Shown here one piece after another: positions 4,095 through 57,434 of a stretch of 64,000 nt of DNA (the first letter of the stretch is position 1; each line of letters opens with the position of its first letter). The notes under the pieces are model-generated. The model was not told where the DNA came from. It saw only the letters and a list, made by a program, of their open reading frames with translations, and made no database searches. This DNA is from Chara braunii (taxonomy: Eukaryota; Plantae; Charophyceae), in assembly GCA_003427395.1 (NCBI GenBank), contig BFEA01000030.1:1471499-1535498 (forward strand), read 5' to 3'. The position numbers were made by a program, and so were the translations under genes.

Positions 4095-4815
4095 TTTTTA
4101 TATAGATGGTAGGTATCACACGATACCTTTCAGATTTTAGCTGAGATTTCCGAGTTTAAAGATGGGAATAATTCAATAATCAGATATATTACTTATGGAT
4201 AGTAATTTTGGTTAATATTTTGGTTAATATTTTGGTTGTTAACCGTTGTTAATTAGATATGATTACATATGATAGTCAAGATAATATTCAGAGCTGATAA
4301 AAGTGATGATGAAGATGATTATAGTAATGATGAAGATACTAAAAATTGAAACCATCAATATTAAGAAATACAAGATTTTCGCCTCCTCCCCCTCATCTCT
4401 CTTTCTCCCTCTCCTAATGAAGCCCTCCCTCCTCCTCCCTCCCTTCTTACTCTCTATTCCCTTCTTTTCTCACCATTTCTTTCATCCCTACCATCCCCCA
4501 TCTCCTTCCCCCACATCTCTCTCCCGCAATACACGTCCTTTTCCGCCGCTCTAACCCTCGCCAAGTCATCCATTATGATAACACACCTATTTTAGGTGCA
4601 AGCGAATCCAACGAACGAGACAGCTATCGATTAGTACGGGAAAAATGAGAGTGCACAAAAGATGATAAGTGAGGGAAGAAGGAAAAGGGCGCGAGAGTCA
4701 GAAAGAGATAGATCAGAAAGAGGATGTGATGTGACAAATGAGATAATGATTGTATGTCGTGATGACGTTATTGATGATTCTACCATTTGTAACCCATTGC
4801 TAATGATATCGACGA

Positions 4816-6189
4816 TTGTGGTGGCCTGATATGCTTGACAATGCGAAAAAATATATCCAAACTTTTCAAGTCTGTCAACGGGATAAGCCACGAGCTCAAA
4901 CCCCTCTTGGTCTACTCAAGCCCTTGCCCATTCCTGCAAGTCCGGGACAGAGTGTCTCCATAGATTTCATGGACACCTGTGTGACTAACAAAAATGACAA
5001 GAGGCTCGTCTTCATCATAGTGGACATGTTTACTAAGTACGCTAGATTGATCCCCATGCCAGAGAAGACTGAGCACGCCATCAAGTTGTTCATGGATAAC
5101 TGGGTGTGTGACTTTGGACTGCCTAAGACTATTGTTAGTGACAAGGATGTCCAGTGCACCAGTGAAATATGGAAGAAGGTTGTTGAACAACTGGGCAGCC
5201 AACTCCAATGACTTCGAAAAATCATCCCAAAGCCAACGGCCAAGCGGAACAGATGAACCGGGTGGTGTACCATCTGCTGAGGCACTGCATTAAGTCCAAC
5301 CAACATGACAAGGATGAAAAATTGCCTCTCATCGCCAACCTGTACAACGATGTTGTACATAGCACTACCGACGTCAGTCCCAATCAGCTGCATTTGGGGT
5401 GGAAGCCTAGATCTGCACTAGACTGCCTCCTTCCTGAAAACTGACCTACTCCAACTCCTGAAACCATTGAATTTGGTGTCCAGTATGAGAATTTGTTGCA
5501 GCAGGTTGTCGAGCATATCGTAAAATCTCAGGAGACAATGATTGCTTCTGAGAACAGACATCGTCGACAGTCCACATTTCAGGTAGGGGAACGAGTCTGG
5601 GTAAAGGCTAGTGAACTAGGGCAGAAATTCAGCGTCTCTAAAAAGCTATTGTAGGTAGCTCGTAGGATGGAAATAGGGTACAGCAGTTGCGGAGATGGTC
5701 TGTTGCAGTAAGTCTTGCCGGAGTGAGGTACAAAGGATTGATGGGGGGTTTCTGAGTCGTTTCTGAACTTTGCCTATCTCTGAAGTTTGCCGTACTAATT
5801 TTCTAAGTAGCTCGATTTTTTCTTAGCCAAAGCCGGGTAATGGCCCCGGTATCTCAAACTTTCGAACGTCTATGTAAATTTTCATATGGGACGCTGGGCC
5901 CGGTTCCCAGCACGTGCCGCTCCCCACGAACAGATTGGAGCTTTGTTCCCATTATTTATATAAAAAAAAAGAAAAAAATTGGATGGTCTCTCGTACATGA
6001 CAAGAATCCTTGGTCATCTGCGCACCTACCCTGTATTTCACGCTTCAAAGCTTGCACCTTTCGCTGAGACTGATCAGTTTCCATCAACGAGATCAATGCT
6101 GCCCCCAACTATGGATGGCCATGTGGACGTCGGCGACATCCTAGAACATAAAGACTTGCCTGTTCCCAGGCATGTTGGCAGGGGAAGAC
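4816..6189 (+). pseudogene. Gypsy integrase fragment up to the chromodomain
   Basis: Integrase core motifs with frameshifts. About 330 bp of unrelated sequence ending in an A-run (5650-5980) replaces the GPW region. Confidence 0.88.
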
Positions 6190-6381
6190 TGTGACGCCCA
6201 ACCTCACGCCCGACACGACTTCCTGATCGGAGTGGGATGGGGGCCCGGAAGTGTGAAAAAAAAGGGGGGTGTGCCAAGGATTTTGGGAAAGTGGGGGTGG
6301 AGTCCCAGGTCGGAACTGAGATCTTCGGTGGCAAGTTTAGGGATAATGGTGCAAGATGGTACGTGAAGATCGTGGCTGGAA

Positions 6382-6999
6382 TTATCGTCTTTGTCTGTCG
6401 CGTTGCTGTGGTCGATTTCTCATCTGGTGAACCCGTGGGTCGTGATGACTGTCGTGCAGTTCGATCAGTTGTCGGCGCCGCTTGACTTCGGTTCGGGTTT
6501 GCCGGGTAATTTTCGAGTCTCGATACACCTGATACCGCTGGCACTTTTCGCACGGTGTGCGGGGCCAATAGCAGGCTATGGAATTCCATGGTCCTACTGT
6601 GCGTTGGTGATATGGGAGGAGGAGGCGGAAGGGCGGGAAACTGGTGGTAATAACGACGAAGCCTGGGGATATGTAGTATTGCGTGTTGTAAGTATCCGGG
6701 TAGTCGGGGCCCCTAGGATCGTTAGTTACGACACAGTGAAAGTCCCTTGCACACAATCGGTCGTTCTTCGTCAGACAAGGGAACTTCAAGTTTACAGCCA
6801 TGTCCGATTGGGGAACTTGGTTTCCCGCATCTTTATAATGAGTCCGGATCGGGGTCGGCTCTTGCAAACGCACTCGTACGCTGCGACTCGGTTTTCTCGA
6901 GATCGTGGTCGTGTGAGGTCGTGCTCTTAAGCGAAAGTGGATCCGTCTTGGGTTCGGTGTACGGATTGTGTTTATCCTGCATGCAACTATCCTACCCAT
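6382..6999 (-). CDS. LTR-internal ORF with a conserved Cys/His-rich ~80-aa domain (6541-6783), function unknown
   Basis: 53/81 aa identical to the LTR copy at 29951-30190; 31 of the identical residues use different codons; one in-frame 3-bp indel. The true start codon is uncertain. Confidence 0.75.
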   Translation of the reverse strand: MGRIVACRINTIRTPNPRRIHFRLRARPHTTTISRKPSRSVRVRLQEPTPIRTHYKDAGNQVPQSDMAVNLKFPCLTKNDRLCARDFHCVVTNDPRGPDYPDTYNTQYYISPGFVVITTSFPPFRLLLPYHQRTVGPWNSIACYWPRTPCEKCQRYQVYRDSKITRQTRTEVKRRRQLIELHDSHHDPRVHQMRNRPQQRDRQRR

Positions 7000-7438
7000 G
7001 CTATGTTGGGTGAGATCCCGACATTACATTCACATCCATGCCATTCGTGTGACGAAAGGAGAGAAAAGGGAAATGACAATCAACACCTCACAACATTCTT
7101 GGTGATCTGATGACGATCGAGGACTAACGATTAAACCCAGACATCCGTAGCGAGTGCTTCCAATCAGATTTGAGACTATTGCTCATGCAGATGGATAATA
7201 GAAGGTGGCGAAATTTGAATTAAACAGGCATCGCAAAACATGATTGGAAATCCGAAAAGATCACTAACGAAAAAAAGTTCACATCCATCCCATGCATACA
7301 CACGAGGCAAAAGCGACAAAGAAAATCCAAGACGATTTACAAGGAAAAGTCCAAAAAGGCCGCAACAAAATCGGCCATATTAGAAACCTAAATTATACAG
7401 ATAAGCAAAAGAAGGGACCACATCCCATACACACAGCT

Positions 7439-7505
<67 letters not shown>

Positions 7506-8366
7506 TCTACGCCCCCGATAAGGGCAGTCCGTCGCCGTGTATCAACACAGAGTTGTCACCCCACTTGGTTCGAGCATGCAAGCCAGGTTCGCCTGTGCAC
7601 CACAGTCCTTCGCGGCCCGCACGTCAACCCCGCATACCTGATACCAGCTCGTCGGATCGCCCAACTCCCTCGTCGACTCACCTTGCAGGCTGACTCGTTA
7701 GCCGACCCTCACTGATCACGCTAACTCCAGACTCGTTAGCCGACCCTCACTGATCAGTGATCGCACTAACTCCAAGGTTCATAGAGAGCAATCTAGTCAC
7801 GCTTGCGAAATTTATAGCATGCATGCTTGCGCGAAGAATACGGGATTAAGCCCATGGAAGAAGAGGAGAAGAGAGGAAGTGCCTGCGTTTGCATGACCAG
7901 GCCGCGGCGTGGGGATCGTAGCCACACTCCATGCATCGATCCGTTCATGCAGGCGTTCAGGTCAATTAGAACAGAGTATGCAAGGCGAAGAAGAAGGAGA
8001 AGACGGTAAAACACGAGGAAATCAAGAAGGAAGGAGGATACAGTTACACTCGCCCTCGCCAAAAGCGACAGTTACACAAGATTGAGGGCGCGCCCCAGTC
8101 AGAACCCAGTTCTCCGTGCAACAAGATGTGCGCGAATGAGAAGAGTGGAGCAACGAAAATTCAAAGTGCCTAAATTCCTAGTCTAAATCCTAATTGCAAA
8201 AGGAAATTCCGAAAAGCCTAAAAACAATTCCACGAGCCCGTGAGGCTCGACATCAGTTTAAAATTAAAAAAAAAAACAAAACGATATTCCCGCGCGAGGA
8301 TCACGCCAAAAATTCCTAGTGCTCACAGCAGAACAAGAAAGAAGCCATGACAACCGTCGTCTATTG

Positions 8367-8662
8367 AACTGACATTTCGTTAAAACTGACATTTTTTTTT
8401 TAATTCACGAAATTGAGCGTACCAAAAAACAACATTTTTTAGTGTTTTTTTGTCCCCATGATGTCGGATGATCCGATCATCGGGTGTCGTGGCGACTCCC
8501 GATGATCTGACCATCGGATGTATGTTAACGGTACTTTACGTTGAGGTACATCAGATGGACAAAGTGAGATAACCACTTTCTCACCCGATGGGCAACAAAA
8601 TTTTAACTAAGTCCACTTTCGTGAATTTAGAAAAAAATGTCAGTTTTAACGAAATGTCAGTT
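8367..8662. mobile_element. MITE with AACTGACATTTCGTTAAAACTGACAT TIRs, nested in the solo LTR
   Basis: More than 30 bp of perfect TIR; TSD ATTG/ATCG; absent from the second LTR copy. Confidence 0.9.
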
Positions 8663-8882
8663 ATCGCGCTCGCTAAGGCGCGGTTACCCAATTGTCGGCG
8701 CGGGACCTTCCCGACATCGACCCGACAAATTCTCACAGAAAACAAAAAGAACGAGGGTATCCATGCAACTTGGCCCGACCAACCCATCTTCTCTGCAGCT
8801 CCCCCATCCGACCCGTCTCACTTCCCCAAGGCAGCTTCGAGCAGAAAGTCGCGCGATTACAAAAAATGGTTCGTCACAGGAC

Positions 8883-9063
8883 CGCCAAAACCTATGAGGG
8901 AGTAACCGGTCAGATTCAGGCATCATACAGATCCAAAAGAAGATCGTTGGTTCACAAGAGAGGAGGTTGTCAAAACAGCGCCTCAGGTCGTGGCAGAGTA
9001 CGAAGGAAAGTTGAAGGGGGAAGCACCTGCATAGAAACATCTCAGCGGACTTTCGAAGCTAAG
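8883..9063 (+). pseudogene. Remainder of the integrase chromodomain
   Basis: PPKPMRE*PVRFRHHTDPKEDRWFTREEVVKTAPQVVA matches 55650-55770. Confidence 0.88.
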
Positions 9064-10572: not shown

Positions 10573-10738
10573 TTGATACCCGACCCCCGGCCGGCCACCG
10601 GGATTGTAAGNNNNNNNNNNNNNNNNNNNNNNNNNNNNNNNNNNNNNNNNNNNNNNNNNNNNNNNNNNNNNNNNNNNNNNNNNNNNNNNNNNNNNNNNNN
10701 NNNNNNNNNNNNNNNNNNNNNNNNNNNNNNNNNNNNNN

Positions 10739-10792
<54 letters not shown>

Positions 10793-10857
10793 GGTGAAGG
10801 TATTATGAAGTCGTAGATCAGCCAGTTGGATAAAGCTGGGAGTTTTCTGAGAAGCAG

Positions 10858-13800
10858 CTATGACTGTGATATGTCAGTGGGGTCGGGTACGAGGACAAAG
10901 TCGGTTGGTTGAAAGGGGATGACGAAATGATCTTGAGGGAGGAATTCCCAAGCGGACTCGGTCGACATCCACGGTTGCCATTGCAAGTTTTCAGGACGGT
11001 GAAGTGTGCAAAGTCTACCTTTCGGGTCCACCCACGTCGTCCGGAAGTTGTCTAGCATCTGTCGCCTCTTAGGTTCTTCTGATTCTTTACGTAGGTCAGA
11101 TTGAAGCTCCTTCCATGCTGCTTGTGTCTGACAGACTATTGTGTCTGCGATCGTTGCTCTTGCTTGCATAAAGGTGAAGGTATTCTGACCTCTCTCGTGG
11201 GCACATCTCATCCGCCATGCTGTCATGAGCAGTGCCANNNNNNNNNNNNNNNNNNNNNNNNNNNNNNNNNNNNNNNNNNNNNNNNNNNNNNNNNNNNNNN
11301 NNNNNNNNNNNNNNNNNNNNNNNNNNNNNNNNNNNNNNNNNNNNNNNNNNNNNNNNNNNNNNNNNNNNNNNNNNNNNNNNNNNNNNNNNNNNNNNNNNNN
11401 NNNNNNNNNNNNNNNNNNNNNNNNNNNNNNNNNNNNNNNNNNNNNNNNNNNNNNNNNNNNNNNNNNNNNNNNNNNNNNNNNNNNNNNNNNNNNNNNNNNN
11501 NNNNNNNNNNNNNNNNNNNNNNNNNNNNNNNNNNNNNNNNNNNNNNNNNNNNNNNNNNNNNNNNNNNNNNNNNNNNNNNNNNNNNNNNNNNNNNNNNNNN
11601 NNNNNNNNNNNNNNNNNNNNNNNNNNNNNNNNNNNNNNNNNNNNNNNNNNNNNNNNNNNNNNNNNNNNNNNNNNNNNNNNNNNNNNNNNNNNNNNNNNNN
11701 NNNNNNNNNNNNNNNNNNNNNNNNNNNNNNNNNNNNNNNNNNNNNNNNNNNNNNNNNNNNNNNNNNNNNNNNNNNNNNNNNNNNNNNNNNNNNNNNNNNN
11801 NNNNNNNNNNNNNNNNNNNNNNNNNNNNNNNNNNNNNNNNNNNNNNNNNNNNNNNNNNNNNNNNNNNNNNNNNNNNNNNNNNNNNNNNNNNNNNNNNNNN
11901 NNNNNNNNNNNNNNNNNNNNNNNNNNNNNNNNNNNNNNNNNNNNNNNNNNNNNNNNNNNNNNNNNNNNNNNNNNNNNNNNNNNNNNNNNNNNNNNNNNNN
12001 NNNNNNNNNNNNNNNNNNNNNNNNNNNNNNNNNNNNNNNNNNNNNNNNNNNNNNNNNNNNNNNNNNNNNNNNNNNNNNNNNNNNNNNNNNNNNNNNNNNN
12101 NTGGGACCACAGTCCTCTTGGGGCCGTAGTCTCTCCATAGACGTATCATCGCTGGCCACATGGGATCCGTGCGCAGATCCCATCTTGCTTGGCCGGCGGG
12201 AGACCTGTCCGAATCCGCACGGGGGTAGGTGGGGATAGACCGGGTTGGATCAGTTAACCAATAGAGGGGGTGCACCGGGCTATCGTGAGGTGACAGCGGG
12301 GCAAGGCAGGCGATCTGGATCAGCGCGTAAGGGGCCCATGGGATGTCATTGGCCAGGAGTAATCTGATAATGAACTTGAATAACAGTGCCTGGATTTCCC
12401 TGCCCGGGTCGATTATTCCCAGCCCCTCCCTAGTCCTTGGTTGGACAAGTGTATCCCAGGGTACTCGTTTTAAGCAACAAATATCGTTGTGGTCATTTTT
12501 CCACAGGTAGGTCGTTGCCGCCTGTCTCTGTTTGGTAAGTTGTTTGTCAGTGAGTAGCCAAAAGGCCACTTTATACCATATTGAGGCGAAGATGGAGTTA
12601 TTAATTGCAAGAGCCCGACCCACCAGGGAGGTTGGTTTTGTGTCCCATCTTGCCATGCGTTGTATGGCAATAGTCACTATTGCGTCCCCGTGATTTGGCG
12701 GTGGGCCCAGGGCCGTGATGTTGACTCCCAGCACAGTTATGGCAGCATTCTTTTCCTTCCACTCTACCGGGGGATGTGTAGGTGGTTGGGCATCCTGCCA
12801 GTTGAGCCACCAGCCTTCCGTTTTGGTCCCCCAGTTGACCTTCATGTCTGCTGCGATCTCAAAGAGACGTATTGTGTGTGTTAAAGCTTGAAAGCTCTGT
12901 TAATTGGTCATGAACAGAACTGTGAGATCGTCAGCGAATAAGGATGTTGTGGGGATAAGGTGTGTCGGGATCTCAGGCACACAAATCTTTTGTATAACCG
13001 GGTTCGATCTTATCATTGTTGCCAAGGTCTCCATGACTAAGACAAACAGCATCGGTGCTATGGGATCTCCTTGTCTCACCGATCGTTGAAGGCGGAACGG
13101 GGCTGCGAGGTGTCCATTAAGCATGATATTGGTGGAGGCCGTTCTATGGAAGATGTTGACCCATATGCAGAATCGCGGCCCGAACTGCATTTTATTTAAG
13201 CACAGTTGCAGAAAGTCTCAATCGACGTGGTCATACGCTTTTTCAAAGTCAATAAAGAGTATGGCGGCGTCGACCTTCCTTTGGCGTGCATATCGGATGG
13301 TCTCATTGACCAGCAAGATATTGTCCTGTATGTTTCTGTTGGGCATGAAGCCTGACTGATCTGGGTGTATTAGATGCGGCAAGGTCGGTAGTAGCCTTTT
13401 CGCCCATGCTTTGGCCACTATCTTGTATGGGACAGGTAAGAGGGTTATCGGGCGGTAGTTCCTTATCTCCTCTTTGTCACCCTTTTTATCCAGCAGGGTG
13501 GTTACCTCTTGGCCGATCATCTCGCCAAATGTCTCCTCATGAAACACTGCATTTACATACCCTAGAAAGTCTTCCTTGAAAGTTTCCCCAAAAAGAAGCC
13601 AGAATTCTTTGGGGAAGGCGTCCACCCCGGTGTTTTTTCGTCATCCATGTCCTGCAGCGCCTGCAGGAGCTCTGTCGGGGTAAGAGAGTTATCCAAGGTA
13701 TGTCTTTGTTGTGTTGACAGCAGGGAGGGGAGGGCGTGTAAAAGCTCCTCTCTCTCCTCTTCCAGGGCCTGGGGCTGTCTCTGGCTAGTCTCAGAGGTGC

Positions 13801-16800
13801 ATAGGTGGTTATAATAGGTGGAGGCGTAGTCCACAATTTGATAGGCATTTGTAGCCTTTGGTTGTGTGACATCGAACGAGTGTTTTAGGGATGGCACCAC
13901 ATTCTGTCTGGCTCTTGCCTTCGCTTTGTTAAAGAAAGTCTTGGTCATCATACCCTCAGATGCATCTTTTTTTATCTTCGCTTGGATCCTCCATTTTTGG
14001 GCCTGGTTATCAAGAAAATCCTGTAGCTGGGCCCTTGCTCTTTGAAGCGCGTCGTACGTGGGAAGGTCCAAGGGGTTATNCATGAGGTGNCNGTCCNAGT
14101 CCTCCAGTTGGAGCAGCAGACGGTCCAGAACAGCCTNACNATCCCGTGCTATTTGGATGAAGANCCTTTTAACTCTCTCCCTGAGTTGAGCTATCCCGTT
14201 ATTGAACCAGTCTACCACAGAGCCTTCCTGCGGCCTGGTTGTGGTCCAAAAACCCCAGAAATCCTTTACCAGTTTTTCCAAAGCCNTTTTTTTCAGGAGG
14301 GATGCGTTGAATTNGAAAAAACTNGGGCCTTTAGATANGTGGGTGTGAAACGAGAGGCCTATGGCAATCATACGGTGGTCAAAGGAAGTACATGGAGNNA
14401 ATGGGAGGATGTCAGNCACCGTTAGTAAGCCCNTCAGGTCCTCTNACACCAAGGNCAGATCTATGCGTGAATTCGATACCCCTCCCGGGCCTCTAGAGCG
14501 CACGCATGTGTATGCCCTTTTACTCGGGTGGAGATGTCTCTAGGAGTCCAGTAATCCTAATTCTGTCATCATGTGGTCTAGAGCCAGACTGTCCTGTCCC
14601 CTTTCCCTGAGACCATCTTGTTGAGATGATGACCGCCTGTCTAGATTAGGATCCAGAGTGGTGTTAAAGTCCCCCATCATGATGATGGGAACATTCCTTG
14701 GTAGTGCTTGAAGCAGACTGTTGAACAACCGCACCCGATGGGCCGGGTCATTGGGGGCGTATACACTAACGAGGCAGATTTCCTCTGCCTCGAAGGATGC
14801 TTTTACCCATACCCATCTGCCTTCCACCTGGTCCCAACCTGACTGTACCGGTATTAATCTAGATGCAGGGTTGAGCCATATGGCCACACCCGTCGAGGCC
14901 GCTGATTTGGCCGGGGCAGCAAAGGATGTGTGTGGCTGTCGCGCTCGGACTTGGTGTGTGGGAGAGGTTGTGAGATGTGTTTCTTGCACTGCAATGACGT
15001 CAGGCCATTTGCCTTTCAAATCCCTCGTTATAAGGTTCCAGAGTGCCGCTGTTTTTTGTTCGCTTGTCTGTGATAGGTCATTTGCGTTCACTGATCGAAT
15101 GTCCAAGTCAGTCTCTCCTAGCTTTTGTGCCCACGCCGGCTGGCGGCGGATCGGTGGTGGGGGACGAGGGGGGCTGGGGCAAACCGGGTCTGGCGGCACG
15201 GCGGGACCCTGGTGGTGCACATTGTCACCTTCATCCGAATAGTCTGGGAGCTCGTCAACTTGCTCTCTCCCCCGAACTCTCACCATTTCTGCATGTTGTT
15301 GTTGCTGCGCCATTGGCTGTTTGGGTTATTGTCTTGTTGGAACTGCCTAATCATTCCCCGCTGCCCCAGCGGATAGGCTAGCGACGAATGGGGGATCATC
15401 CCATGTTCTGCTGGCGTCCAACGTCTCATCGTCCAGTAGGCACCGTATGAAGAGCACCTGGTCTTCCGCAGACCACACATTGTTTGTGCGCATTCGAGAA
15501 ATTGAGGTATCCAACAGCTGTTGTTGGGACAGCCAGTTAAAATGGTTGTCATGTTGTACTTGCTGTTGGTTTTGGCCGAAGAGGACGAAGACTGGTGTGA
15601 CATTTTTGGGAAGCGGGATTCCCTGCGGTAAGACTGTCCCGATGGCTCCCTGGTCCCCCTGCTGGATTATATGGTTTCTCAGCATGTGACGGGTGAGCCT
15701 TTGCGGGTTCGGGCCTCTCCATCCCTGTATCGTAAGGCTCGTAGGGGCGTTCTGCGTTCCTTTAAGAGTACGCGTCGCCAATCTGGGGACCCGCGGCGTG
15801 GTCAATCTAAGGCCTAGCTGCCAGGGTTCATCCTGGTTTGTTCTTCTAATTGGAAGGATCACCACCCCTTCATGAGCTGCCTCTCTCGGGAAGGGCATCG
15901 CAGTTGGGGACATACAGTCAGCGAAGAGGACACGTTTGGGGAGCAGTCCCTCTTCTTTGTCTCCAGTGTTCGATGAAAGGGTAATAGCAGGGTATGTGGG
16001 CGTTTGTTGTTGTGGCTGTTTCTGTCTTACGGTTGTGCTCCTCAACAGAGGTAGATCCCACTCAAATTCTGAGTAAGAGGTCCAACACTCTTCTTGCTAT
16101 TCAATCTCGTTTTGTAGCAGGGCCTTTGGGGAACCGGTCTCAGAGTCAGTTTCAGACTCCGATTCCGAATCGGACGTTGAGGTCTGTGCTGTGCCGTTTT
16201 GTAGCATGAGAGTTTGCTGTGGACCGAGGATGAGGGCAGTTGTTACTAGTTCCTGAGATACTGATGATATTCCTTGAATGTGTAGGATTGGTCGGAGAAG
16301 GTGTTGAGGGACACATCCGAGTACATTGGTTGCCCCCTGAACTCCTTCCGTCGACCGCACCCCAACTGTGTCCTCCAGCTCTTCTATTATGATGTCTGGC
16401 CAGCATATGCCGTCATGGGACAGACCCTGCCTGCTCAATTCTTCTGTATCATTGTCCAACAAGAGGCTTTGATTTTGCTGTAGCAATGTCTTTTTCTCTG
16501 CCATTTTCTGAAGAATTCTGTTGAGAAGACCATGGACAAATGCCATGATTTGTGCCGCCACCGCATTCCAGTCAATTTCAGCAGGATTTCGGGCAGAATC
16601 CAGAAGTGATTTGACCGATTCTGTATTCATAAAGGCTCTTCTGAGTTTTTCCCAGTGCAGCGGCGGTATGAGGGAGTGTTCACCCCCTTTGGCAGATTTT
16701 AGTAAGTTCAGTAACACTGTGTCTGTTATGGCTTTCAATCTCGCGCGGACCCTTTTGTCTCTGGAGGCTCTTTTTGGTGCCCTGTGGTTCCTGCCTCTTT

Positions 16801-17191
16801 CCTTTTCCGGCGAAGAGTCTCCCTGGTTTTCCCCCACCTGCCTCATGTCCACCTCCGTTCCCGGGGGAGGGGGGGAACCTCCTCCACTGGGGGGGNNNNN
16901 NNNNNNNNNNNNNNNNNNNNNNNNNNNNNNNNNNNNNNNNNNNNNNNNNNNNNNNNNNNNNNNNNNNNNNNNGGGGTGTCCCAGAACTGTGTTGAGATGT
17001 GGCCTGGCCTGGGCTCGAAGAATTGCTGCCACCTCCGGTAGGACAGTGAATGTCGGGGTGGGTGACATACCCAGGGGCTGCTGCATTATTTGCAGTCCAA
17101 TGTCTTTTGGAGGCATAGGGGGAGGGGGGCCTGACAGATCCATTGGGAGGTGGTCCATGGGATCCTGTGTTGTCCTCTCTACTCCTTCCAT
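10858..17191 (-). pseudogene. LINE ORF2: long N-terminal extension + APE endonuclease (from ~15110) + reverse transcriptase
   Basis: IAVQETH, SVYAPND, MGDFN, SRIDL, FDHRMI (APE); KTPG, NYRPITLL, QSGF, IDFEKAYD, VRQGDPIAPMLF, LFADDL (RT). ORFs starting at 17191, 16045, 15313 and 14503 are all in one frame, separated by point stops. Confidence 0.9.
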
Positions 17192-17221
17192 GTCTGTCAG
17201 CGAGTTGTCTGGCCGTCTCAG

Positions 17222-19442
17222 CTAGGACGCTGCGAAGGCATTTGCCTTTTCCTTCCATAATCCCATTGTTTTCTGGCAGCGCTCTATTCTTTCCCAGTTG
17301 TTTGATCCTTTTTTTCTTATTATAGAGGCATGCGTCCCCAAGTACAGCCCTTTTTTGGTGCCTTTTGTGGGGCAGGGTTTGCCTTGCGCATGGGGAGGGG
17401 GAGGGAGGGGTAGGGGGTAGGGGGTCGAGGCCGTGGAGGATCCTTCGTTTGACAGTCGCTTTTCAAATCCAGTTTTTTCACCGTTGTCAGCTTGGGGCTC
17501 CTCCTCGCTGTGTCTCTCCTCCATCCTCGTTTTTTCCTTCAGCTCATTCTGTCGTTTGATCTCTCTCTCCTTTTCTCTCACTCGTTCTTTTTCTCTCTCC
17601 CTCTCTCCCTCCCTCTCTCTCTCCCTTTCCTTCTCATTGGCCCTCTCCTTTTCCCTTTGTTTTTCCCTTTCGGTTTCAGCCTCTTTCTCTCTCAGTGCCA
17701 GTTGTCTTTCCCTGTCCTGCTCCTGCTCCCTCTGCCGTTTCCTCAATTCTTCGTATTCTCTGTGTTTTTCGACCTCCCTTTGTTTCTCATCCTGTCTCTC
17801 CTTCTCCCTTCTCCTGCCACTCTCTTTGCTTCCCTCGCCTTGTTTGTCCTTAACAACCCATTGTTTGCCTTTCCCGTCTGTTCTAGTCATGCCTGTTTTC
17901 TGAGTGGATCCCATTTCCCTGTTTGGGGCACTTGGAGCCGTCAGTTGGGATTGCTGTGTATTGCTCCGTGGCATTGTGTTATTGGCAGGAGATCTCCCCG
18001 GCCGCCCCTGACCTTCCCATTCCCAGGTACCTGGTTGCTTGATGGAGGTCCGTCGAAATACCCATCCTTCAAATGCTGGGTCTTCAGGAACCCACCGTCC
18101 CGGCCCTTCCGGGTGGGGCTGCACCAGCCCTTTGAGCTGGCGTCCCTTCATGTTGGGGCATTGGGGGTCTATGCATAAGTGCCCCCTTGTGTTGCATGCA
18201 TAGCACCAGGGGTCCTGCGGGTGGTTAACTTGTACCGCATGGGTTCGGCCGTCGTGGTGGAAGGACCACTGTCCACTTACCGGAAAACCTTTTGAGGGGT
18301 CCCAGTCAACGGCGACGAGCAGGGTATCGTCCATCGTCCCTTTTAGGGAGAAATTGCGGCTGGTCTGTGATATATCCAAGGATCGGCGCAATTTGTTGTA
18401 GATCTGCTAGGAATGCTCCTTGTACCGCGAGCGGGGCAAAGCAGAATTCCACCCAGAAGTGACTCCTCATCAGTTGCTCTCTCCGCTGGTCTGTGGTGAA
18501 GGGTGTTGCCAGTTGCCAGCGTCGAACCTTAACCTAGTGATTTTTGTATCTGAGCTCCTGCATTTTCATTAGATTAATCCTATCTTTAGGATGGATGGTT
18601 ATGACCGTTATACTGTTCGGTCCGGCCGTCTCCACCAGGAAGTGATCTTCCACAGCCTGGTCGTCTGTTTTAATGGTCCTCAACTTTCCTTGCACCCACC
18701 TTAATTTGTCATTGATGGGTGAAGCCCCGAACACTTGGGGAAAGATGAATTGCACTGCATTGTGCGAGTAGATATGGTTCCTGTTTGCCACCGCCTGTGA
18801 GGGGAATATGACATGAGGATAGATGTATCCATCTTTCTCAATATACTTATTACCGGGGCGGATGTGAGGTTTTTGAATGAAGTGCGCTTTCATCAGTCCG
18901 ATGGCATCGAGTGAGATCACCTCTCCTGGTGTACTCGTCCCTGCTCCAGCCAGGGCTTGCCTGAGAGCTTGGGTGTCCCTTGAGGGCTTCTGTCCCAGAT
19001 CCTGCTGTTGCACCGTTTGCAATGATTGTGACAGTAATCTATCCTCCGTACCAGGAGGTGGGGGTTCCGGTGGTGGGGACGTGTTCCCTTGAATCAGTTT
19101 GTCCTTATATGAGCCAGCCGTCGTGCTAGTCCTGCCCCCCTCCCCCTGATTACCCTTCCTTCCTCTCTCGAGTTGTTGAACCTGGTCATAGGGTGTGGCC
19201 AGATTCATCGAGGGAGAGTCTTCCAGCAGCCCCCTATCCGTCCCTGGTGGAGGCGGTTCCGGGGAGCAAGGCGGGGTGCTATGGGGATCTCGGTCTCGAT
19301 CCTGGTCAGACTGCGCAGGGCACCTATCTAACCCATTTGTGCACCCATTGATTTGGTTATGATCCCTAAGCCCTTGCCTTGTGTCATCTTGTTTCTTCCT
19401 TTTGATTTTGATTCTCCCCCGGCCCTTGCTAGCGTAGGTCAT
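17222..19442 (-). pseudogene. LINE ORF1 (RRM-like region, CCHC zinc knuckle, charged coiled coil)
   Basis: PWCYACNTRGHLCIDPQCP; REQLMRSHFWVEF matches KEQLMSSYYWVEY of LINE-B; one stop (18534) and one frameshift (~18335). Confidence 0.85.
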
Positions 19443-19592
19443 CCTGGTGGCCGGAGCACGGGATCAGGTGCACGCGTGATTCGAGTATTGGTATTGAGAC
19501 CGTAAGAACGATTATACAGATGGTGATGTCAGTAGTCCCTGGTGTTGGGAGTTCAGCGGTNTGTGTACGCGCGCTTCGAGTGTCAGTATTGC

Positions 19593-19830
19593 GGTCATAG
19601 GTACAATCAATCATACATTGTAAGCCAGGGGGGGGGCGGTAGAGGGGTCAGTTAGGGAGAAGCAAGGGGGGAGTGATCGTGTAGGTTTGAGCGGGGGAGG
19701 GAATGTCGGTAATGTGGTCATGGGTACAATCCATCATACATTGTACGGCAGGGGGTTGGGGGGGGGGGGGTTGGTAGAGGGGTTAGTCAGGGAGAAGCAG
19801 GGATGGAGGGAGCAATCAGGTAGGTTTGAA
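19593..19830. repeat. Tandem ~123-bp duplication at the 5' end of LINE-A
   Basis: GGTCAT.GGTACAATC.ATCATACATTGTA...G-run...GTAGAGGGG..AGT.AGGGAGAAGCA...GTAGGTTTGA occurs twice. Confidence 0.75.
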
Positions 19831-22334
19831 CGGGAGAGGTAAGATGGGGGCGCCGGCCAGGGTCGGTCTCACCCGCCACCCGTCTAAGGTGGTTGTCGAT
19901 AACTCCGATCGCTTCTGCTCCCTCCCTGATTCGCTCATCATGCCTTGCAGGGCCGAGTTGTCATATTCCGCCGTAAGCCGATCTCATCGTCGTTCCTGCC
20001 TCCCTCGCCCCAGCTGCCTTGTCGTCCCGCTTCTCTCTCTGTCCCCTACCACCTTGTCTCCCTTCCCCCCACACAGCCCTCACCTTTCCCTTCTCCCCCC
20101 CCTTTTCCACCCTTTGCGTCCTTCTATTCTCTGTTGAGGTGCCGTTCTCAATCCCCCCCCTCACCTCCTCCATCCCCCCATTTTAGTATGTGTTGCCTCT
20201 TTCATAACTCCCTCCTGTTGGCGAGACACATCAGTCACTAGCGTGTTTTCGTATCTCCCCTATACGCAACTTGTGTAGGCTAATCTCGTCAGCCGCNGGC
20301 ACTGTCTTCAGCTTTCTCTTCGTGCTTCCTTTCNGGATTCTCTCCCTCTTTGTGCCCTCTCCTCTCCCTCCCTTCTCTCTCACCGTCAGTCTCACCTTTC
20401 CCTCTATCGTCTATCTGCCACCGCTTGTCACTATACTTCAGGCCACGTGGACGCATCCGAGGGGGGTGTCCTCAGCCACNCATGCATGCTATGGCGACAG
20501 GGTCCCTTCGCCCAACTCGGTCGTTTCGAGTTAGTCAACGGGAGTGCGGTCGGGCCTTGCCGTACCGGTCCCGTTAGCGCGTCACNNNNNNNNNNNNNNN
20601 NNNNNNNNNNNNNNNNNNNNNNNNNNNNNNNNNNNNNNNNNNNNNNNNNNNNNNNNNNNNNNNNNNNNNNNNNNNNNNNNNNNNNNNNNNNNNNNNNNNN
20701 NNNNNNNNNNNNNNNNNNNNNNNNNNNNNNNNNNNNNNNNNNNNNNNNNNNNNNNNNNNNNNNNNNNNNNNNNNNNNNNNNNNNNNNNNNNNNNNNNNNN
20801 NNNNNNNNNNNNNNNNNNNNNNNNNNNNNNNNNNNNNNNNNNNNNNNNNNNNNNNNNNNNNNNNNNNNNNNNNNNNNNNNNNNNNNNNNNNNNNNNNNNN
20901 NNNNNNNNNNNNNNNNNNNNNNNNNNNNNNNNNNNNNNNNNNNNNNNNNNNNNNNNNNNNNNNNNNNNNNNNNNNNNNNNNNNNNNNNNNNNNNNNNNNN
21001 NNNNNNNNNNNNNNNNNNNNNNNNNNNNNNNNNNNNNNNNNNNNNNNNNNNNNNNNNNNNNNNNNNNNNNNNNNNNNNNNNNNNNNNNNNNNNNNNNNNN
21101 NNNNNNNNNNNNNNNNNNNNNNNNNNNNNNNNNNNNNNNNNNNNNNNNNNNNNNNNNNNNNNNNNNNNNNNNNNNNNNNNNNNNNNNNNNNNNNNNNNNN
21201 NNNNNNNNNNNNNNNNNNNNNNNNNNNNNNNNNNNNNNNNNNNNNNNNNNNNNNNNNNNNNNNNNNNNNNNNNNNNNNNNNNNNNNNNNNNNNNNNNNNN
21301 NNNNNNNNNNNNNNNNNNNNNNNNNNNNNNNNNNNNNNNNNNNNNNNNNNNNNNNNNNNNNNNNNNNNNNNNNNNNNNNNNNNNNNNNNNNNNNNNNNNN
21401 NNNNNNNNNNNNNNNNNNNNNNNNNNNNNNNNNNNNNNNNNNNNNNNNNNNNNNNNNNNNNNNNNNNNNNNNNNNNNNNNNNNNNNNNNNNNNNNNNNNN
21501 NNNNNNNNNNNNNNNNNNNNNNNNNNNNNNNNNNNNNNNNNNNNNNNNNNNNNNNNNNNNNNNNNNNNNNNCAGGCCCTGACACCACTGCCACCCGTGAG
21601 TTACAAACGCCTTTTCGAACTCAGGCCCTCCCACAGACGCCGAAGGCTGTTTTAAGTGCCCATTACAAACTTCCATGTGACATAAACATACTTCCCCCTT
21701 TTTTATATTATTATTTTTCAATTACCTGTCGAAACTGGACAGGACGGCCTTATTTCCTGATTTTTTCTCACCTTCGGATCTGGCTTTAGTCGATCTTCAA
21801 TGGTATGGGGTGGAAGCTGAGTGAGAAGGCTTCAATTGCTGATGATTATTCTATTATCTAAGTAGTAAGAAGGAGAGCAAGGGGCAACTAGCTTGTTGTG
21901 TCATGTTTTGATCTGGCGACTCATAAATTGCTGAAGAGGCAGTTATCTTGCTCTTGATAGATTAGGTTGTTTTCCTTCAAGTTGGTTCCCGGGTCCCTTC
22001 GGATCTCGTTAAAAGCAAAACTGGGTAAGGCTCCCAGACATGTTACATATCCGGGTAGACTGTGAGGACCCCGGCCTCATCCTTATCCTTTGGAATTGAT
22101 GCCTTGGGCACTGGGCCCCTTTTTTTTTTTTTTTTTTTTAAAGGCCTTTTTTATTGTCATCATAGTATTACAGGGAACCCTGTAGCAGCCACATCCGTGC
22201 GCAAGCCTCCAAAGAGGGAATATGGGGGAGCTGCACCCACCAGCAGGTGGTCGATACTGGCAAGGAGCATCAGGACCGAGCTTCTTCGATGGGCCAGTCA
22301 CTGTGCCTCCCCTCCGGGCAGTTCTGTTTGTGAC

Positions 22335-27999: not shown

Positions 28000-29416
28000 T
28001 CGCCCCCACCAGTGTTATTGGTGCTGATAGAGCAGACACCACTAGCACCTGGAGAGAGGCTCCATCTATTGGTGGGGAGCATCACCTGCTGGAAAATGGG
28101 TCCAGCGTCCCATATACAGACTGAATTTGAAGTACATCAGAAAAACATTGTGGGGGTTCCTGCCAGCATTGATTACCTTGGGATCCAGGGGATTGACTGA
28201 GCAGTTCACTCTGAATCCGGCGCCAGATGCCTACTGCCACACTAGTTCCTACCTCCCCCTACCAGCCCCAGTCCCACATCATAAAGATATGTTGTCCCTT
28301 ATGAGAATATACATGCATTGATGTACTGGAGCCATTTTCTGACTTCGGCTGAAGAAGTTCTAAGAGCACTTTTGAACTCAGTACTAATGAGCCCCTTCCA
28401 GGAGCCTACACCGCCCAGGGCCACACTTCTCCTACTGAATCCACACCAGCATCACCCTGCTGTTGGGCGTCAGACTTCAATTAGCCCTCCTCATGTTTCT
28501 GTTGTCGTCCCTCTTGGTTATTTTTTTGTTGTTGCTTTGAAAAAAAAAAAAAAAAAAAAAAGTGTTTCTGCTGTCGTCCCTCCAAGCATTATGCTCTCGT
28601 TGTTCCTTTTTGCTTTCCTGGATTAGGCTAATTAGCGTTTTGGTCAGTTCCAAAATGGCGGTCGATTCATTCGACCTTGCAGGGTTCTCAATCGGTGGCG
28701 GGGGTGCCGTCATTACAGGTGTTGGCATCACTGGGACAGGGACGCTTGTGATCACACTCGGGGCCGGTCGTTTAGGGGCTATCTGTTCCAGATAGGTAAC
28801 AGGGCCTGATACGAACCCCATGTTTTCGAACTTATTTTGCAACGCTGCCAACTCAACTTTTGCCCTCGCAAGTTCGGACGAGTCTCCTTCCTTAGGAATG
28901 TCTTCTCCTTCTAGGAAACTCGCCGCGAACTTTCGTTCCATTTCTTCTGCAGCCGCCCTAATCTGTTGCAGTGTGTGATTGATGGGGGAGAACTGTTTTC
29001 ACAGTTTCGCCCTTATCGTTCGGCTGCGAAGTTCGGTAGAACTGGTTTCGATATTCTGCAATGGACTCGAGAGGTTTTTTAACTCGGTCCTTGATCATGA
29101 AGAGCGCTTGCTCTGGATGAACATAATCAAATCGATTCAAAAAATCTCACTTGAAAGTCGGGAGATCCACCCATACATAAGTGTTGAACCAATGATGAGC
29201 GTCCCCTCCTAATCGGGCGGGAATATTCGCCTGAGTTTCGTTATCGTCAAACTGCTGCGCCCGGAGCGTGGACAACCATGCTCCAGCGAGATGATGTGCA
29301 GGGTTAAACAGATAGAGATCAGGTGGCGTCATGGGAGCCCGTGCTCGTGGGGCGGGTTGATTAGGATTTTGCTGGGGATTCGAGTCGTGTAGGGGGTTCT
29401 GCTGATTAACATTCAT
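28000..29416 (-). pseudogene. gag (retrotransposon capsid-like), disrupted
   Basis: ARLGGDAHHWF...FK*DFLNRF...KKPLESIAEYRNQF (Retrotrans_gag-like pattern), then coiled-coil and Pro-rich segments. Confidence 0.7.
28514..28562 (+). mobile_element. 49-bp poly(A)-tailed micro-insertion in gag
   Basis: 20-bp TSD TGTTTCTG(T/C)TGTCGTCCCTC at 28494-28513 and 28563-28582. Confidence 0.8.
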
Positions 29417-29556: not shown

Positions 29557-29569
29557 GGCTCCGATACCA
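29557..29569 (-). promoter_or_regulatory. Primer-binding site (tRNA-iMet type)
   Basis: Minus strand reads TGGTATCGGAGCC, adjacent to the LTR. Confidence 0.85.
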
Positions 29570-29950
29570 ACCTCACGCCCAGCGCGACTTCCTGATCGGA
29601 GTAGGTTGTGGGCCTGGAAGTGCAAAAAGGGGTGTGCCAAGGATTTTTGGGAAAGTGGGGGTGGAGTCCAAGGTCAGAACTGAGATCTCCTGTGGCAGAG
29701 TTTTTCGGGGGCACGAGTGCAATTTGGTTGAGAGGACGGATCGGTTCCGGTCGTAAGGCAGATGGCATGCGCAGATCATTCAAGGTCATCCGAACCGTCT
29801 GTTTTGATGACGGCGGTTCGACGAAAGGTCCATCCGGGGTGGGTGTGATTCTGATGAGTTAGGTCGTCGGATGTCGCCTCGTGGCGTCGGTCGTCGCACG
29901 TTCGGGTTAGTCCATCGGGTCTCCGGGGCTCTCTGGTTGCTGCGTTGCCG

Positions 29951-30190
29951 GCAATTTCCGCAAGGCGTGAGGGGCCAGTATGGGGCTATGGAGTTTCACA
30001 GGACGACCGTGAGTTCATGATACGGGAGAAGAAGATGGAAGGGAGGGAATTTAGTGGAGATAACGACAAAACCGAGGGAAATAAAGTAGTGTGTGTGGTC
30101 AGAAGTGGGGAAATCAGGGCACCGTGGATCGCTGGTTGTGGCACAATGGAACTCTCTAGGACACAGTCGATTCTCGGTTAAACAGGGGAA
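29951..30190 (-). pseudogene. Second copy of the LTR-internal Cys/His domain (one TGG>TGA stop)
   Basis: FPCLTENRLCPREFHCATTSDPRCPDFPTSDHTHYFISLGFVVISTKFPPFHLLLPYHELTVVL*NSIAPYWPLTPCGNC. Confidence 0.75.
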
Positions 30191-31581
30191 CCTCTGTCGG
30201 AGACACTCTTTTATCCAAGGGGTGAGGTACTCCGGATCCCACGACGAATCTGAGTTCCTGGAGTGTGTCATTTTGTCATTGCGAAACCGTGGAATTCCTT
30301 ACCACGTGGTTACCCGGCTGGGGAATTTTCGAGCTTGGCGTTCATAAATTTCGTGTTGATCCCGATATTCGACGATTGCGATCACCGCGTGTGAGTACGT
30401 GTAGGCTGCACGAATTGAATCGCACTTACACGTGTTCACATGGCATGATCACTTCGTTGCAGACGTAGAATGGCCGCCGGACACACCCAATCAGTCACTC
30501 TTCCCACAATCGACAGCCCTTCCATGCCTAGGTGGTTACGAATCGACGTGCGTGGACACGTGTAAGTGCGCAGATCGGATCGTGCTTACACGCATCCCCG
30601 CGAGTTTCCGGACAAACAACTACCCAATCGTCTAATCATTCTATGCACGCAACCTTTCCCGATCATGCAAGGTACTACTACACATTCGCAGTAACAACAA
30701 CAGATCAAAAAGGACAAACAACAATAGTGAGGATTACGTGAACTTTCCTACTATGCTCATGAGGGTATCAAGACAATAAGCAAAGGCAAAGATCAGGCAT
30801 AAGGAAAAGCAAGCAGACATAACATCCATTCATCCATTCATTCGGCATAACACACAATATCCGAGATTGAAATCGCAAAAACGAGTGTGGGCCGAAACCA
30901 AGTCAAGATTCCGAAAAACAAACGAGAACGGGCGACTCGCCCTGTGCCGAGATCAAAATTTATATACAAAAGCAAAGAGGGAGAAAAGACAAAAGAAACA
31001 GCAAATCCGCGTCCATCAACCTCAGCTCTCTCTTCCTCTCTCTCTCTCTCCGATGCGGATAGTCCGTCGTCGTGCACCAACTCACAAAGTCGTCACCCCG
31101 CTTAGTCCTCCCGCACCCGTCAGGTTCGCCCGTGCCACAGTCCGTCGTGGCCCGCGTCAACCCTGCGCGTTTGGCACCAGCTCGTCGGGTTGCCCGACTC
31201 CCACTTCAACTCACCTCTTGCTTCGCTCGTGAGCCGACCCTCACTGATCGCGCTACCCCGAGCTTCCACCAGTTGGTTAAGAGAGCTATCTAATCGCGCA
31301 ACCGAAATTTATAGCGCGCATGCGTGCGCGAAGAACACGGAATTGCAAGGACTAAGAAAGAGATCAGGGGAGGAAGCGCCTACGTTCTTCATGGCCAGAC
31401 CGCGGCATGGGAGACGTAGCCTCGCTCCACGCATCGATCCCAGTATGCAGTCCGCGGGCTGGCTAGACACAGTAGGAAGAAGCGAGAGCGGGAAAGACGA
31501 AGCACAAGAAGAAAGGATACAATTACAATGGCGCCCGCCCAAAATTACAGTTACACACACGATTAAAGGCGTCAACTAATC

Positions 31582-31782
31582 CTATGTAGAACCCCGTACG
31601 AATACGGGCCGTCCGTACGTACGGGCTCATGTGGTCGTACGGGCCGTACGTATGGAAAAAAAAGCAAAGAAAAAAAAATGAAAAAAATCTGAAAAACAAA
31701 TATGTTATGCAGAAAAATAAACTCAAACAATTTTGCCTCATGGGCATATTGAAATTCGTTGCCAAATTTGAGATAAAAAAAA

Positions 31783-31856
<74 letters not shown>

Positions 31857-31916
31857 CTGTACGGGGTTGTACATACGGCCATACGGCCCCCGTATGTCAT
31901 ACGGAGTGTTACACAG
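31582..31916. mobile_element. hAT-like MITE nested in the family-B LTR
   Basis: Imperfect TIRs CTATGTAG.../...TTACACAG; 8-bp TSD AACTAATC/GACTAATC; CCGTAC/TACGG subterminal repeats; absent from the solo LTR. Confidence 0.8.
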
Positions 31917-33360
31917 GACTAATCAGAGTTCCGTTGCAGCCGCAAAGAGAAGCGCGTAAGCAAAAAACGCTGCGCGGCAAGGAAAAACTCCTAATTGCAA
32001 AATTTTTAAATTCTTGTCTAATGCAGAAAAAAATGAAAAACACAAATCCCGAAGAGAAGTTTGAAATTCCGAGAGCCATAGTGGCTCGACAAGATTCGAC
32101 AAAGAATTCAAAAAGAAATTTCAAGAAGAACGAAGCAAAATTCCCGCGCGATGTCTGCGCCTAAAAAGTCCAAAATCGAAACAGAAGAAGCGACGTCAAC
32201 ATTTATTAATCGCGCGCATGGCAGTTCGCCACTCACACAACCAATCAACCAATCGATCGTCCCGGGGCTCACCCGGGACCGAACCCAACCATCCGGAAAG
32301 ACGACGAAAAAGGACTAAGAAGTGGGGACACTGATGCAATTTCCTTTCCATCCCAATCTCCCGTAATCGTCCCATCCTTCCCAGCTTAGAACCCCTCGTT
32401 GCTACTGCGCAGAAAATCGCGCGGTGCAGAAATCGATTCGTCACACTCCACTCCTCCTCCCCTTCTTCGTCATCTTCTTCCTCCTCCTCCTCCTCCTCTT
32501 CTCCTCCTCGTTCGTTAGCCATAGCCAACGTATCAGCCGGTTTTTTTTTTTTCCTCCCGAACATCCATCTTCCCTGTGCGCTGCTTCCTCCTCCTCCTCC
32601 TCCTTGTCTTCTTCTCCTCCCTCCTCTTCTTTTTTTTCTTCCTCCACTCCTCTTCTTTGTCATCTTCTTCCTCCTCCTCCTCCTCTTCTCCTCCTCCTCC
32701 TCTTCTTCTCCTCCTCGTCCGTTAGCCATAGCCAACGTATCAGCCTCTTCTCCCTGCATGATGTTGTTTGCAGACCTGCAAGCCCTGAAAGCAATGCCCC
32801 CCTCGCAACTCTCGACCTCGCCCTCCCCCACCCCCCCTCCCACCCCCCCCCTCCCGGTACACCCCTAAAAAAAAGTCCAACCTTCAAAGTTTTATTGAGG
32901 AATCCGACATATCTCGGCAAGCGCAGTCGGATATGATATGAAACAGACTGCACGGCAGACAGCCTATGCATGAGGATAGCATTCAGAAGATACACCCAAT
33001 ATATGTCAATGCTGATCACGCACACAAAATAGAGCAAGAAACCAAACGCAAAGGCCACCCATCATACCATAACGAAAAGTGGGATTACAAAAATGCTCAT
33101 AACTTAGAATAATCGAAAGATATGTTCACGAGCACCTTGCATAATCCCAAACCCTTCCACATCACCTTGCGGCCATTCCCCGAACTTCAAAAATGCTCAG
33201 AACTCAGAACCAATCGGTCTCAAATACTCACAAGGGCCAGGATGCGTCCACAGAGTAACACCCTATGAGAACCGATCCCGAACCTCAATCGAAAGACGAC
33301 AGGTACGTTCACGAGCACCTTGCATAATCCCAAACCCTTCCACATCACCTTGCGGCCATT

Positions 33361-47375: not shown

Positions 47376-47557
47376 TGATGCTTCGTCCTACCCTAAGCGT
47401 CCGGCTTCGTCTCCCTAAGTTTTCCCTAGTTCCGGACTTCAAAAAAGTTCAGACTTGCAACATTAATCCTAGAGCAGATATGCAGAAAACACAGATTTCA
47501 GAAAACGCAGTCTTCGGGGATTTGCAGATTTTACAGATTTTTGTCGTTTTTGCCTAA

Positions 47558-48496: not shown

Positions 48497-48499
48497 ATT

Positions 48500-48510
48500 T
48501 GGTATCAGAG
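48500..48510 (+). promoter_or_regulatory. Primer-binding site (tRNA-iMet)
   Basis: TGGTATCAGAG, 3 nt after the LTR. Confidence 0.92.
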
Positions 48511-55818: not shown

Positions 55819-55843
55819 ACTTCTCAGAGGACTAGCGCAGTTT

Positions 55844-55854
55844 GGAGGAGGGAA
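55844..55854 (+). promoter_or_regulatory. Polypurine tract
   Basis: GGAGGAGGGAA immediately before the 3' LTR. Confidence 0.9.

Positions 55855-57401: not shown

Positions 57402-57434
<33 letters not shown>

Follow-up and report, generated by a model that had tools for sequence, protein, structure and literature searches.

LTR copies of the window and the features that they carry

The stretch of Chara braunii DNA analysed here, referred to as the window, comprises 64,000 nucleotides and harbours two copies of a family-B LTR, a solo LTR and the 5' LTR of a decayed element, both of which encode an 81-residue peptide on the minus strand, at 6541-6783 in the solo copy and at 29999-30240 in the 5' LTR. 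The features that matter for the following account are distributed along the window as follows.

6190-8878, minus strand: family-B solo LTR of 2689 nt, bounded by the 7-bp terminal inverted repeats TGTGACG...CGTCACA and recognised from its ends, from the pol region that it interrupts and from a skip in RNA reads
7806-7818, minus strand: conserved TATA box (GCTATAAATTTCG) of the solo LTR, with a putative transcription start about 30 nt downstream
6382-6999, minus strand: intact ORF of the solo LTR, 205 codons (the end coordinate takes in the stop codon), the upstream frame being closed just before the ATG
6541-6783, minus strand: conserved core domain of 81 residues (FPCLT...CEKC), with omega of 0.09-0.17 within clade B, the sole block with a 3-base periodicity
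6385-6540, minus strand: Arg/Lys-rich C-terminal tail of 52 aa with 16 R+K and a pI of ~11.8
29570-32445, minus strand: 5' LTR of a family-B element now truncated and decayed, with the TGTGACGAA start and ...GGGCGTGAGGT end of the solo LTR, followed by the PBS and gag remnants
31303-31315, minus strand: TATA box of the 5' LTR, with the exact motif of the solo LTR
29804-30271, minus strand: second copy of the ORF (MTHSR...), with an in-frame TGA at 29996-29998 and a start that matches protein P0001 (MTRSR...)
29557-29569, minus strand: PBS-like TGGTATCGGAGCC, directly after the 5' LTR
28477-29416, minus strand: decayed gag remnant of the family-B element, containing stops, assigned from motif resemblance and from its place after the PBS, and devoid of any Pfam match

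The solo LTR is inserted in the integrase/C-terminal region of an older gypsy element of the plus strand. A family-A-like pol protein alignment covers 4810-6203 and resumes at 8882-9016, on either side of the LTR, and RNA reads derived from uninterrupted paralogues join position 6186 to position 8880, skipping 2693 nt, i.e., the 2689 nt of the LTR plus a putative 4-bp target duplication. The flanking bases, GTCC and GTCT, match at three of four positions. The earlier note had described 6190-8878 as a solo LTR, with an internally deleted element as the reading that would undo it, and this clean 2689-nt insertion into pol speaks for a solo LTR. The possibility that it represents the 3' LTR of the element starting at 29570-32445 was rejected, since family-A pol lies on both sides of it and the two copies are unalignable outside the conserved blocks. 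That element is truncated after ~28477, and a self-BLAST of the 64-kb window revealed no partner for its 5' LTR. On the flanking older element, immediately adjoining the solo LTR, many RNA-seq reads with poly(A) ends at ~5941-5951 occur at a depth of 20-80x (window 5900-5960), and this region is the end of an expressed, polyadenylated transcript.

The LTRs of this lineage, 2.3-2.9 kb in length, share a common layout. A TGTGACGAA start opens a U3 of ~900-1100 nt which ends in the TATA box, and a leader of 780-1050 nt separates the TATA box from the sense ORF, after which 250-400 nt of non-coding DNA lead to the conserved ...GGGCGTGAGGT end, with the PBS and gag coming next in the case of a 5' LTR. 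The TATA motif matches the window exactly twice, once per LTR copy, where 0.05 matches would be expected by chance, and the ORFs of the window start ~780-1000 nt downstream of it; the clade-C LTRs introduced below possess related CTATAAATTCC motifs at the same relative place. The leaders of both clade-B LTRs also contain a (GA)n microsatellite at corresponding positions (7440-7505 and ~30960-31000, minus strand). The earlier note had located the coding block ~380-620 nt upstream of the PBS, which is about right, the distances being 351-593 nt to the end of the solo LTR and 430-671 nt to the PBS in the 5' LTR.

Depending on their context, the LTRs terminate differently. The 5' LTRs are without the final 11 nt, which bear the CA end, and run from ...GGGCGTGAGGT (...GAGGT) straight into the PBS (window 29557-29580), and the solo and 3' LTRs display 11-12 extra bases (TGGGCGTCACA, TCGCGCGTCACA, TGCACGTCACA) ending in CGTCACA (window 6190-6210; locus L002, 2530-2568; locus L006, 21140-21165). 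In L006, a palindromic junction GCGCGTCACA-TA-TGTGACG is found just before the 3' LTR (18370-18400). The PBS-like motif which follows the 5' LTRs consists of TGGTATCGGAGCC in the window and in L005, TGGCATCGGAGCC in L003 and TGG[CT]ATCGGAGC in L007, and we take it to resemble the usual initiator-tRNA-Met PBS (TGGTATCAGAGC), as a prediction.

Coding signal, relatives and selection

The solo block 6541-6783 and the 5'-LTR block 29999-30240 were aligned codon by codon over 80 codons, with a single 3-bp indel. Identical residues occur at 53 of the 80 positions and 31 of these 53 are specified by different codons, so that the hand counts of the earlier note (53 identical residues, 31 with different codons, a 3-bp indel as the only one) were reproduced exactly. 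Its sequence pattern requires a single amendment, the tryptophan of the WNSIA motif being specified by TGG in the solo copy but replaced by TGA (29996-29998) in the 5'-LTR copy. Substitutions at codon positions 1, 2 and 3 number 14, 15 and 41, respectively (chi-square ~20 with 2 degrees of freedom), and the Nei-Gojobori method gives a dN of 0.19, a saturated dS of ~2.1 and an omega of ~0.09 in the coding frame. The remaining five frames exhibit either an omega of 0.9-1.9 or 4-9 stops, the antisense frame with the wobble position in common having 7; the six-frame dN/dS comparison called for by the earlier note thus yields, for the two window copies, a low omega only in the minus-strand frame that it had proposed. 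A tblastn comparison of one window copy with the other returns E = 1e-31.

This coding signal is sharply delimited. A global alignment of the LTR tails contains a gap-free island at 6783-6541, in which 40-45 of every 60 bases match, and on both sides of the island the matches drop to a near-random 19-29 of 60 and the flanking DNA becomes unalignable. The 3-base periodicity of substitutions was looked for in ungapped LTR blocks of at least 60 columns with at least 60% identity, a scan that leaves out an indel-bearing conserved block after the TATA region; among the blocks scanned it is confined to 6541-6783 (p down to 7e-5), no second coding block being detected. The conserved non-coding blocks, namely the TATA region and the LTR ends, are devoid of periodicity.

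A search with the 81-residue query among 1.84 billion representative proteins retrieved three real relatives, and a second database supplied one more. A further candidate, P0004 (E = 7e-4), was discarded because its similarity consists of four short stretches in a repeat protein, taken as chance. P0001, a protein of 164 aa that is 60% identical to the query, shares its MT[HR]SR start with the 5'-LTR copy of the window. P0003, P0005 and a stretch of P0002 make up a separate group, clade C, which is ~30% identical to clade B, the group of the window. P0001 and P0003 come from assembly GCA_003427375.1, P0002 corresponds to Chara braunii GBG61242.1, and P0005 originates from a metagenome contig. 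In the protein databases searched, homologues were confined to the Chara braunii assemblies and this one metagenome contig. In addition, a clade-C gag query matched 12 Chara braunii proteins, the loci of three of which were taken for analysis. The complete set comprises eleven copies of the ORF at eight loci, distributed between the two clades.

The metagenome homologue (locus L004; ENA ERZ27272674, contig k141_2797453) belongs to clade C, consists of 175 aa and is ~48-50% identical to the Chara copies, with a saturated dS. The gene family therefore exists outside both reference assemblies, and this member perhaps comes from another charophyte. The gene model GBG61242.1 (L003, 10001-88218) is of another kind, since it spans 78 kb and encodes 1077 aa in which the LTR ORF (residues ~431-560) is fused to a DCP1/WH1 decapping domain and to other pieces; it is probably a chimeric prediction that took in TE exons.

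The location of the ORF within the LTR can be observed most directly at locus L005, where a direct repeat (7298-8530 versus 18378-19628, 94.8% identical over 1251 nt and cut by N runs) flanks gag, protease, RT-RNase H and integrase, in the order typical of Ty3/gypsy. Pfam domains of the interior comprise zf-CCHC (1.3e-8), an aspartyl protease (4e-6) and RT_RNaseH (2e-23), followed by Integrase_H2C2 and rve; the RT palm domain gave no match among the L005 ORFs, an ORF-free stretch occupying its place. Both repeats contain the LTR ORF, from 8273 onward in the first and from 19371 onward in the second, where it is cut by an N run at 19629. In L003 and L007 the ORF lies within the 5' LTR, before the PBS and gag, and L003, L005 and L007 share an LTR-PBS junction made of GGGCGTGAGGT followed by TGGyATCGGAGCC. 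In L006 it lies within the 3' LTR (18388-21165) and in L002 within an LTR of solo or 3' type; no 3' LTR of L003 was found within 50 kb. The claim of an ORF inside the LTR is thus upheld in both LTRs of L005, in 5'-LTR contexts (the window, L003 and L007) and in 3' or solo contexts (the window solo LTR, L002 and L006). For clade C the location is shown directly. For clade B, of which no two-LTR element occurs among the loci examined, the shared architecture, the homology and the finding of the ORF in a solo LTR as well as in a 5' LTR point to the same location.

With respect to selection, omega amounts to 0.09-0.17 for every within-clade pair of clade-B domains and to 0.11-0.28 for the clade-C elements compared over 172-177 codons, with dS values of 0.4-1.0 or saturated. 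The basic tail of clade C, taken separately over 69 codons, gives 0.17, and all the comparisons between elements fall in the range of 0.09-0.28. The two LTRs of L005 serve as an internal control, their ORFs differing at 3, 3 and 2 sites for codon positions 1, 2 and 3, with an omega of ~2, which is neutral decay after insertion, as expected. The claim of a protein-coding region under purifying selection is therefore sustained by the low omega (~0.09) in one frame only, by the 14/15/41 distribution and by the low omega between elements. As judged from these codon comparisons, purifying selection is shown to keep the gene while the elements propagate, the inserted copies decaying neutrally.

Because inserted copies are free to decay, several of them contain a single stop, namely the window 5' LTR (29996-29998), the 5' LTR of L005, L006, and L003, in which the stop occurs early. 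In the clade-B copy of L002, two stops precede the domain and one Cys has been lost. The 5'-LTR copy of the window (29804-30271) is a pseudogene, and among the copies examined none combines a young age with proven integrity in a two-LTR element.

Predicted protein and its expression

Depending on the copy, the ORF comprises 164-205 codons, the core being its conserved block. This core of ~80 residues is built around a hydrophobic centre (GFVVI.T.FPPF.LLLPY..L.V.PW..IA.YWP.T.C..C) and is followed by the basic tail, which occurs in 7 of 7 copies with a pI of 9.9-12. The ORF starts with MT[HR]SR in clade B and with MWT[ND] in clade C, and three clade-C copies (L005, L006 and L007) have the end ...ARWEARQYFLD* in common, the positions of start and stop being kept within each clade. 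The earlier suggestion of a small accessory protein agrees well with these conserved starts and stops and with the selection acting over the whole ORF in clade C, and we infer that the product is an accessory protein of the element.

Its biochemical role is more conjectural. The earlier note had envisaged zinc binding through a C, C, HC, H, CxxC array. Three cysteines (RxC and CxxC; domain positions 11, 78 and 81), and only these, are invariant across both clades, the FPC, FHC and PYH ligands turned out to be clade-specific, and no zinc-finger family was matched; each clade possesses at least four Cys, the fourth at differing positions. Zinc binding by the protein, though possible, is weakly supported. 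Since the tail is strongly basic, its composition suggests a binding to nucleic acid, perhaps to the element's own RNA or DNA. This function is a guess from composition because structure prediction failed, two AlphaFold2 runs on 8-row alignments having given unusable models (mean pLDDT of 46.1 and 46.7). Searches for known folds and families were equally negative, Pfam yielding no match at the curated cutoff for the ORFs and all the aligned members (best Toxin_7, E = 0.21), a profile search against PDB sequences nothing better than E = 5.4, and an ESM Atlas feature search no usable match.

RNA-seq coverage of the ORF is almost nil and offers no convincing signal for the solo copy, defining neither the start nor the end of a transcript. 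In three oligo-dT RNA-seq runs, no read at least 90% alike was found over 6756-7290 of the solo LTR, and the domain is covered 1-4x in one of the three, by reads which are 90-95% alike. Both strands are about equally covered in this run, so that a carry-over of DNA is possible.

The leader, from the TATA box to the ATG, contains 19-24 upstream ATGs, which makes it likelier that the protein is made from an LTR transcript that is spliced or internally initiated than that the full-length genomic RNA is translated. In clade B the TATA box is followed, at ~100-130 nt, by a GGTGAGT-like motif, in place of which clade C has a weaker GGTGCGAGT. Within the LTRs a canonical poly(A) signal is missing downstream of the ORF, the only AATAAA or ATTAAA found there being an ATTAAA at 2288 of L002, in the AT-rich insertion of that copy, so that the assignment of R and U5 is tentative. 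Two clade-B copies also display a mini-ORF of three codons (ATG ACA nnn TGA), the TGA of which overlaps the main ATG (ATGA), at 30269-30283 of the window (minus strand) and at 61-74 of L001; the solo LTR is devoid of it. Such an overlap of stop and start could regulate initiation.

A probable LTR-borne gene, its rivals and its nearest known counterparts

Taken together, the conserved block is best explained as the core of a real protein-coding gene located inside the LTR of a Ty3/gypsy lineage in Chara braunii, to which we assign a probability of about 0.8. The gene would be needed during the replication of the element and, after a copy has become fixed in the genome, would be free to decay, and the accessory protein with its basic tail would bind nucleic acid, perhaps the RNA or DNA of the element. 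With the LTR promoter upstream of the ORF, any complete LTR, even a solo one, would represent a potential promoter-plus-gene unit.

A tentative extension, to which we give chances well short of even, considers the LTR as a self-contained gene, made of a promoter, a leader possibly containing an intron, and the ORF, for a factor acting in trans on the whole family. Such a factor could, for instance, activate its own LTR in trans, serve in the export or packaging of RNA, or suppress host silencing. If this were true, scattered solo LTRs could continue to provide all family members with the factor, and the system would constitute a counterpart, in the plant lineage, of the accessory genes of complex retroviruses.

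Other explanations would deprive the block of a gene of its own. The earlier note had left room for an N-terminal extension of Gag beginning inside the LTR, a reading that does not hold in its simple form, since the ORF has its own stop in every copy and is followed by 250-400 nt of closed frames before the LTR end and the PBS; in L003, moreover, gag is in a different frame from the ORF. In a modified form, the ORF would be the N-terminal exon of a longer Gag, spliced across the LTR end and the PBS. The ORF does precede gag, the two being on one strand, GT dinucleotides are found towards the end of the ORF, ~28 codons of open frame precede the gag ATG of L003, and the P0002 gene model uses a donor right after ...SKRRV. 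This same model, however, spans 78 kb, fuses the ORF to a DCP1 gene and is probably an artefact of prediction, the stop of ...ARWEARQYFLD* is conserved in L005, L006 and L007 with selection reaching the end of the ORF, the differing frames of the ORF and gag in L003 are separated by ~380 nt containing stops, and RNA-seq, with its almost nil coverage, reveals no splice joint. A Gag exon thus appears quite improbable.

The chance is also very small that the block is a relic, i.e., a captured fragment of a host or foreign gene that is no longer functional and owes its codon pattern to an earlier history. Stops in most of the copies examined and the lack of a convincing RNA-seq signal for the window copy would suit a relic, but dS ranges from 0.4 to more than 2 between elements with omega still at 0.09-0.28, in two clades that are ~30% identical. 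Such a large dS with a low omega in both clades therefore indicates a selection exerted throughout the diversification of the elements, beyond the capture. The starts and ends of the ORF are conserved as well, and no host homologue occurs among the 1.84 billion representative proteins. Finally, retroelements harbour cis-acting RNA structures in the part of the leader that immediately precedes the PBS. The block is situated there, and its conservation might serve a nucleic-acid signal for packaging, dimerisation or reverse transcription instead of a protein. This is extremely improbable in view of the strict 3-base periodicity, the different codons used for 31 of the 53 identical residues, the indel of exactly 3 bp and the open frames of 164-205 codons in several copies; the conserved non-coding blocks at the TATA region and the LTR ends, in turn, have no such periodicity. 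A dual role of the block, as both a protein and a nucleic-acid signal, is possible.

LTRs are normally non-coding control regions. By analogy of layout, the nearest known case is the sag gene ("LTR ORF") of MMTV, which similarly forms a complete sense ORF within the LTR and consequently occurs twice per provirus and also in isolated LTRs. In MMTV, a vertebrate betaretrovirus, sag is located in U3 and its product is a type II membrane glycoprotein, whereas the Chara ORF lies 780-1050 nt downstream of the LTR TATA box, on the putative R/U5 side, and belongs to a Ty3/gypsy element of a streptophyte alga, where it encodes a small basic protein with no detected similarity to sag. Accessory proteins with coding sequence in LTR DNA are also represented by HIV nef and foamy virus bel/bet, which start in the internal region and overlap U3 only; unlike them, the Chara ORF has both its start and its stop within the LTR, downstream of the LTR promoter.

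With respect to plants, the Chara ORF, conserved in eleven copies at eight loci with an omega of 0.09-0.28, resembles the additional ORFs (aORFs) of other retrotransposons. These aORFs, such as Ogre ORF1, the env-like ORFs of Athila/Tat and the antisense ORFs of Grande, RIRE2 and Retand, are extra, lineage-conserved ORFs of unknown function that most members of a Ty3/gypsy family from the plant lineage possess (PMC7264820). The aORF review assigns all of them to the internal region, on either side of gag-pol and mostly between pol and the 3' LTR, and does not mention any ORF inside an LTR (PMC7264820). The Chara ORF differs from them in lying wholly inside the LTR and has no detectable sequence similarity to them. 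The literature on LTR-borne ORFs mostly deals with MMTV, and in our search of it, incomplete in coverage, no plant or algal retrotransposon was described as having an ORF within its LTR.

Owing to the masking of LTRs as non-coding by annotation pipelines, an LTR gene kept by selection would mean that the coding repertoire of retrotransposons is undercounted. Each element would carry two copies of the gene, one in each LTR, and recombination between LTRs would leave a potential promoter-plus-gene unit where a dead scar would otherwise be expected. In addition, the Chara elements would have strong-stop and leader regions far longer than those of the textbook model. The protein is an orphan, and its involvement in retrotransposition or counter-silencing could be tested in an alga whose lineage is close to land plants. 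On the annotation side, the Chara gene model GBG61242.1 has already taken in the LTR ORF as an exon.

Other elements share the window with the two family-B LTRs. A family-A gypsy element occupies 47556-58107 of the plus strand, with an LTR pair (47556-48496 and 55853-58107) that is 89-93% identical and a 3' LTR split by an N-run assembly gap of ~1.3 kb (56396-57721). A LINE-type element on the minus strand (13200-19442), rich in N and ambiguous bases, encodes an endonuclease/exonuclease/phosphatase domain (Pfam 1.6e-7), and long N runs extend over ~10700-12130 and 20580-21580.
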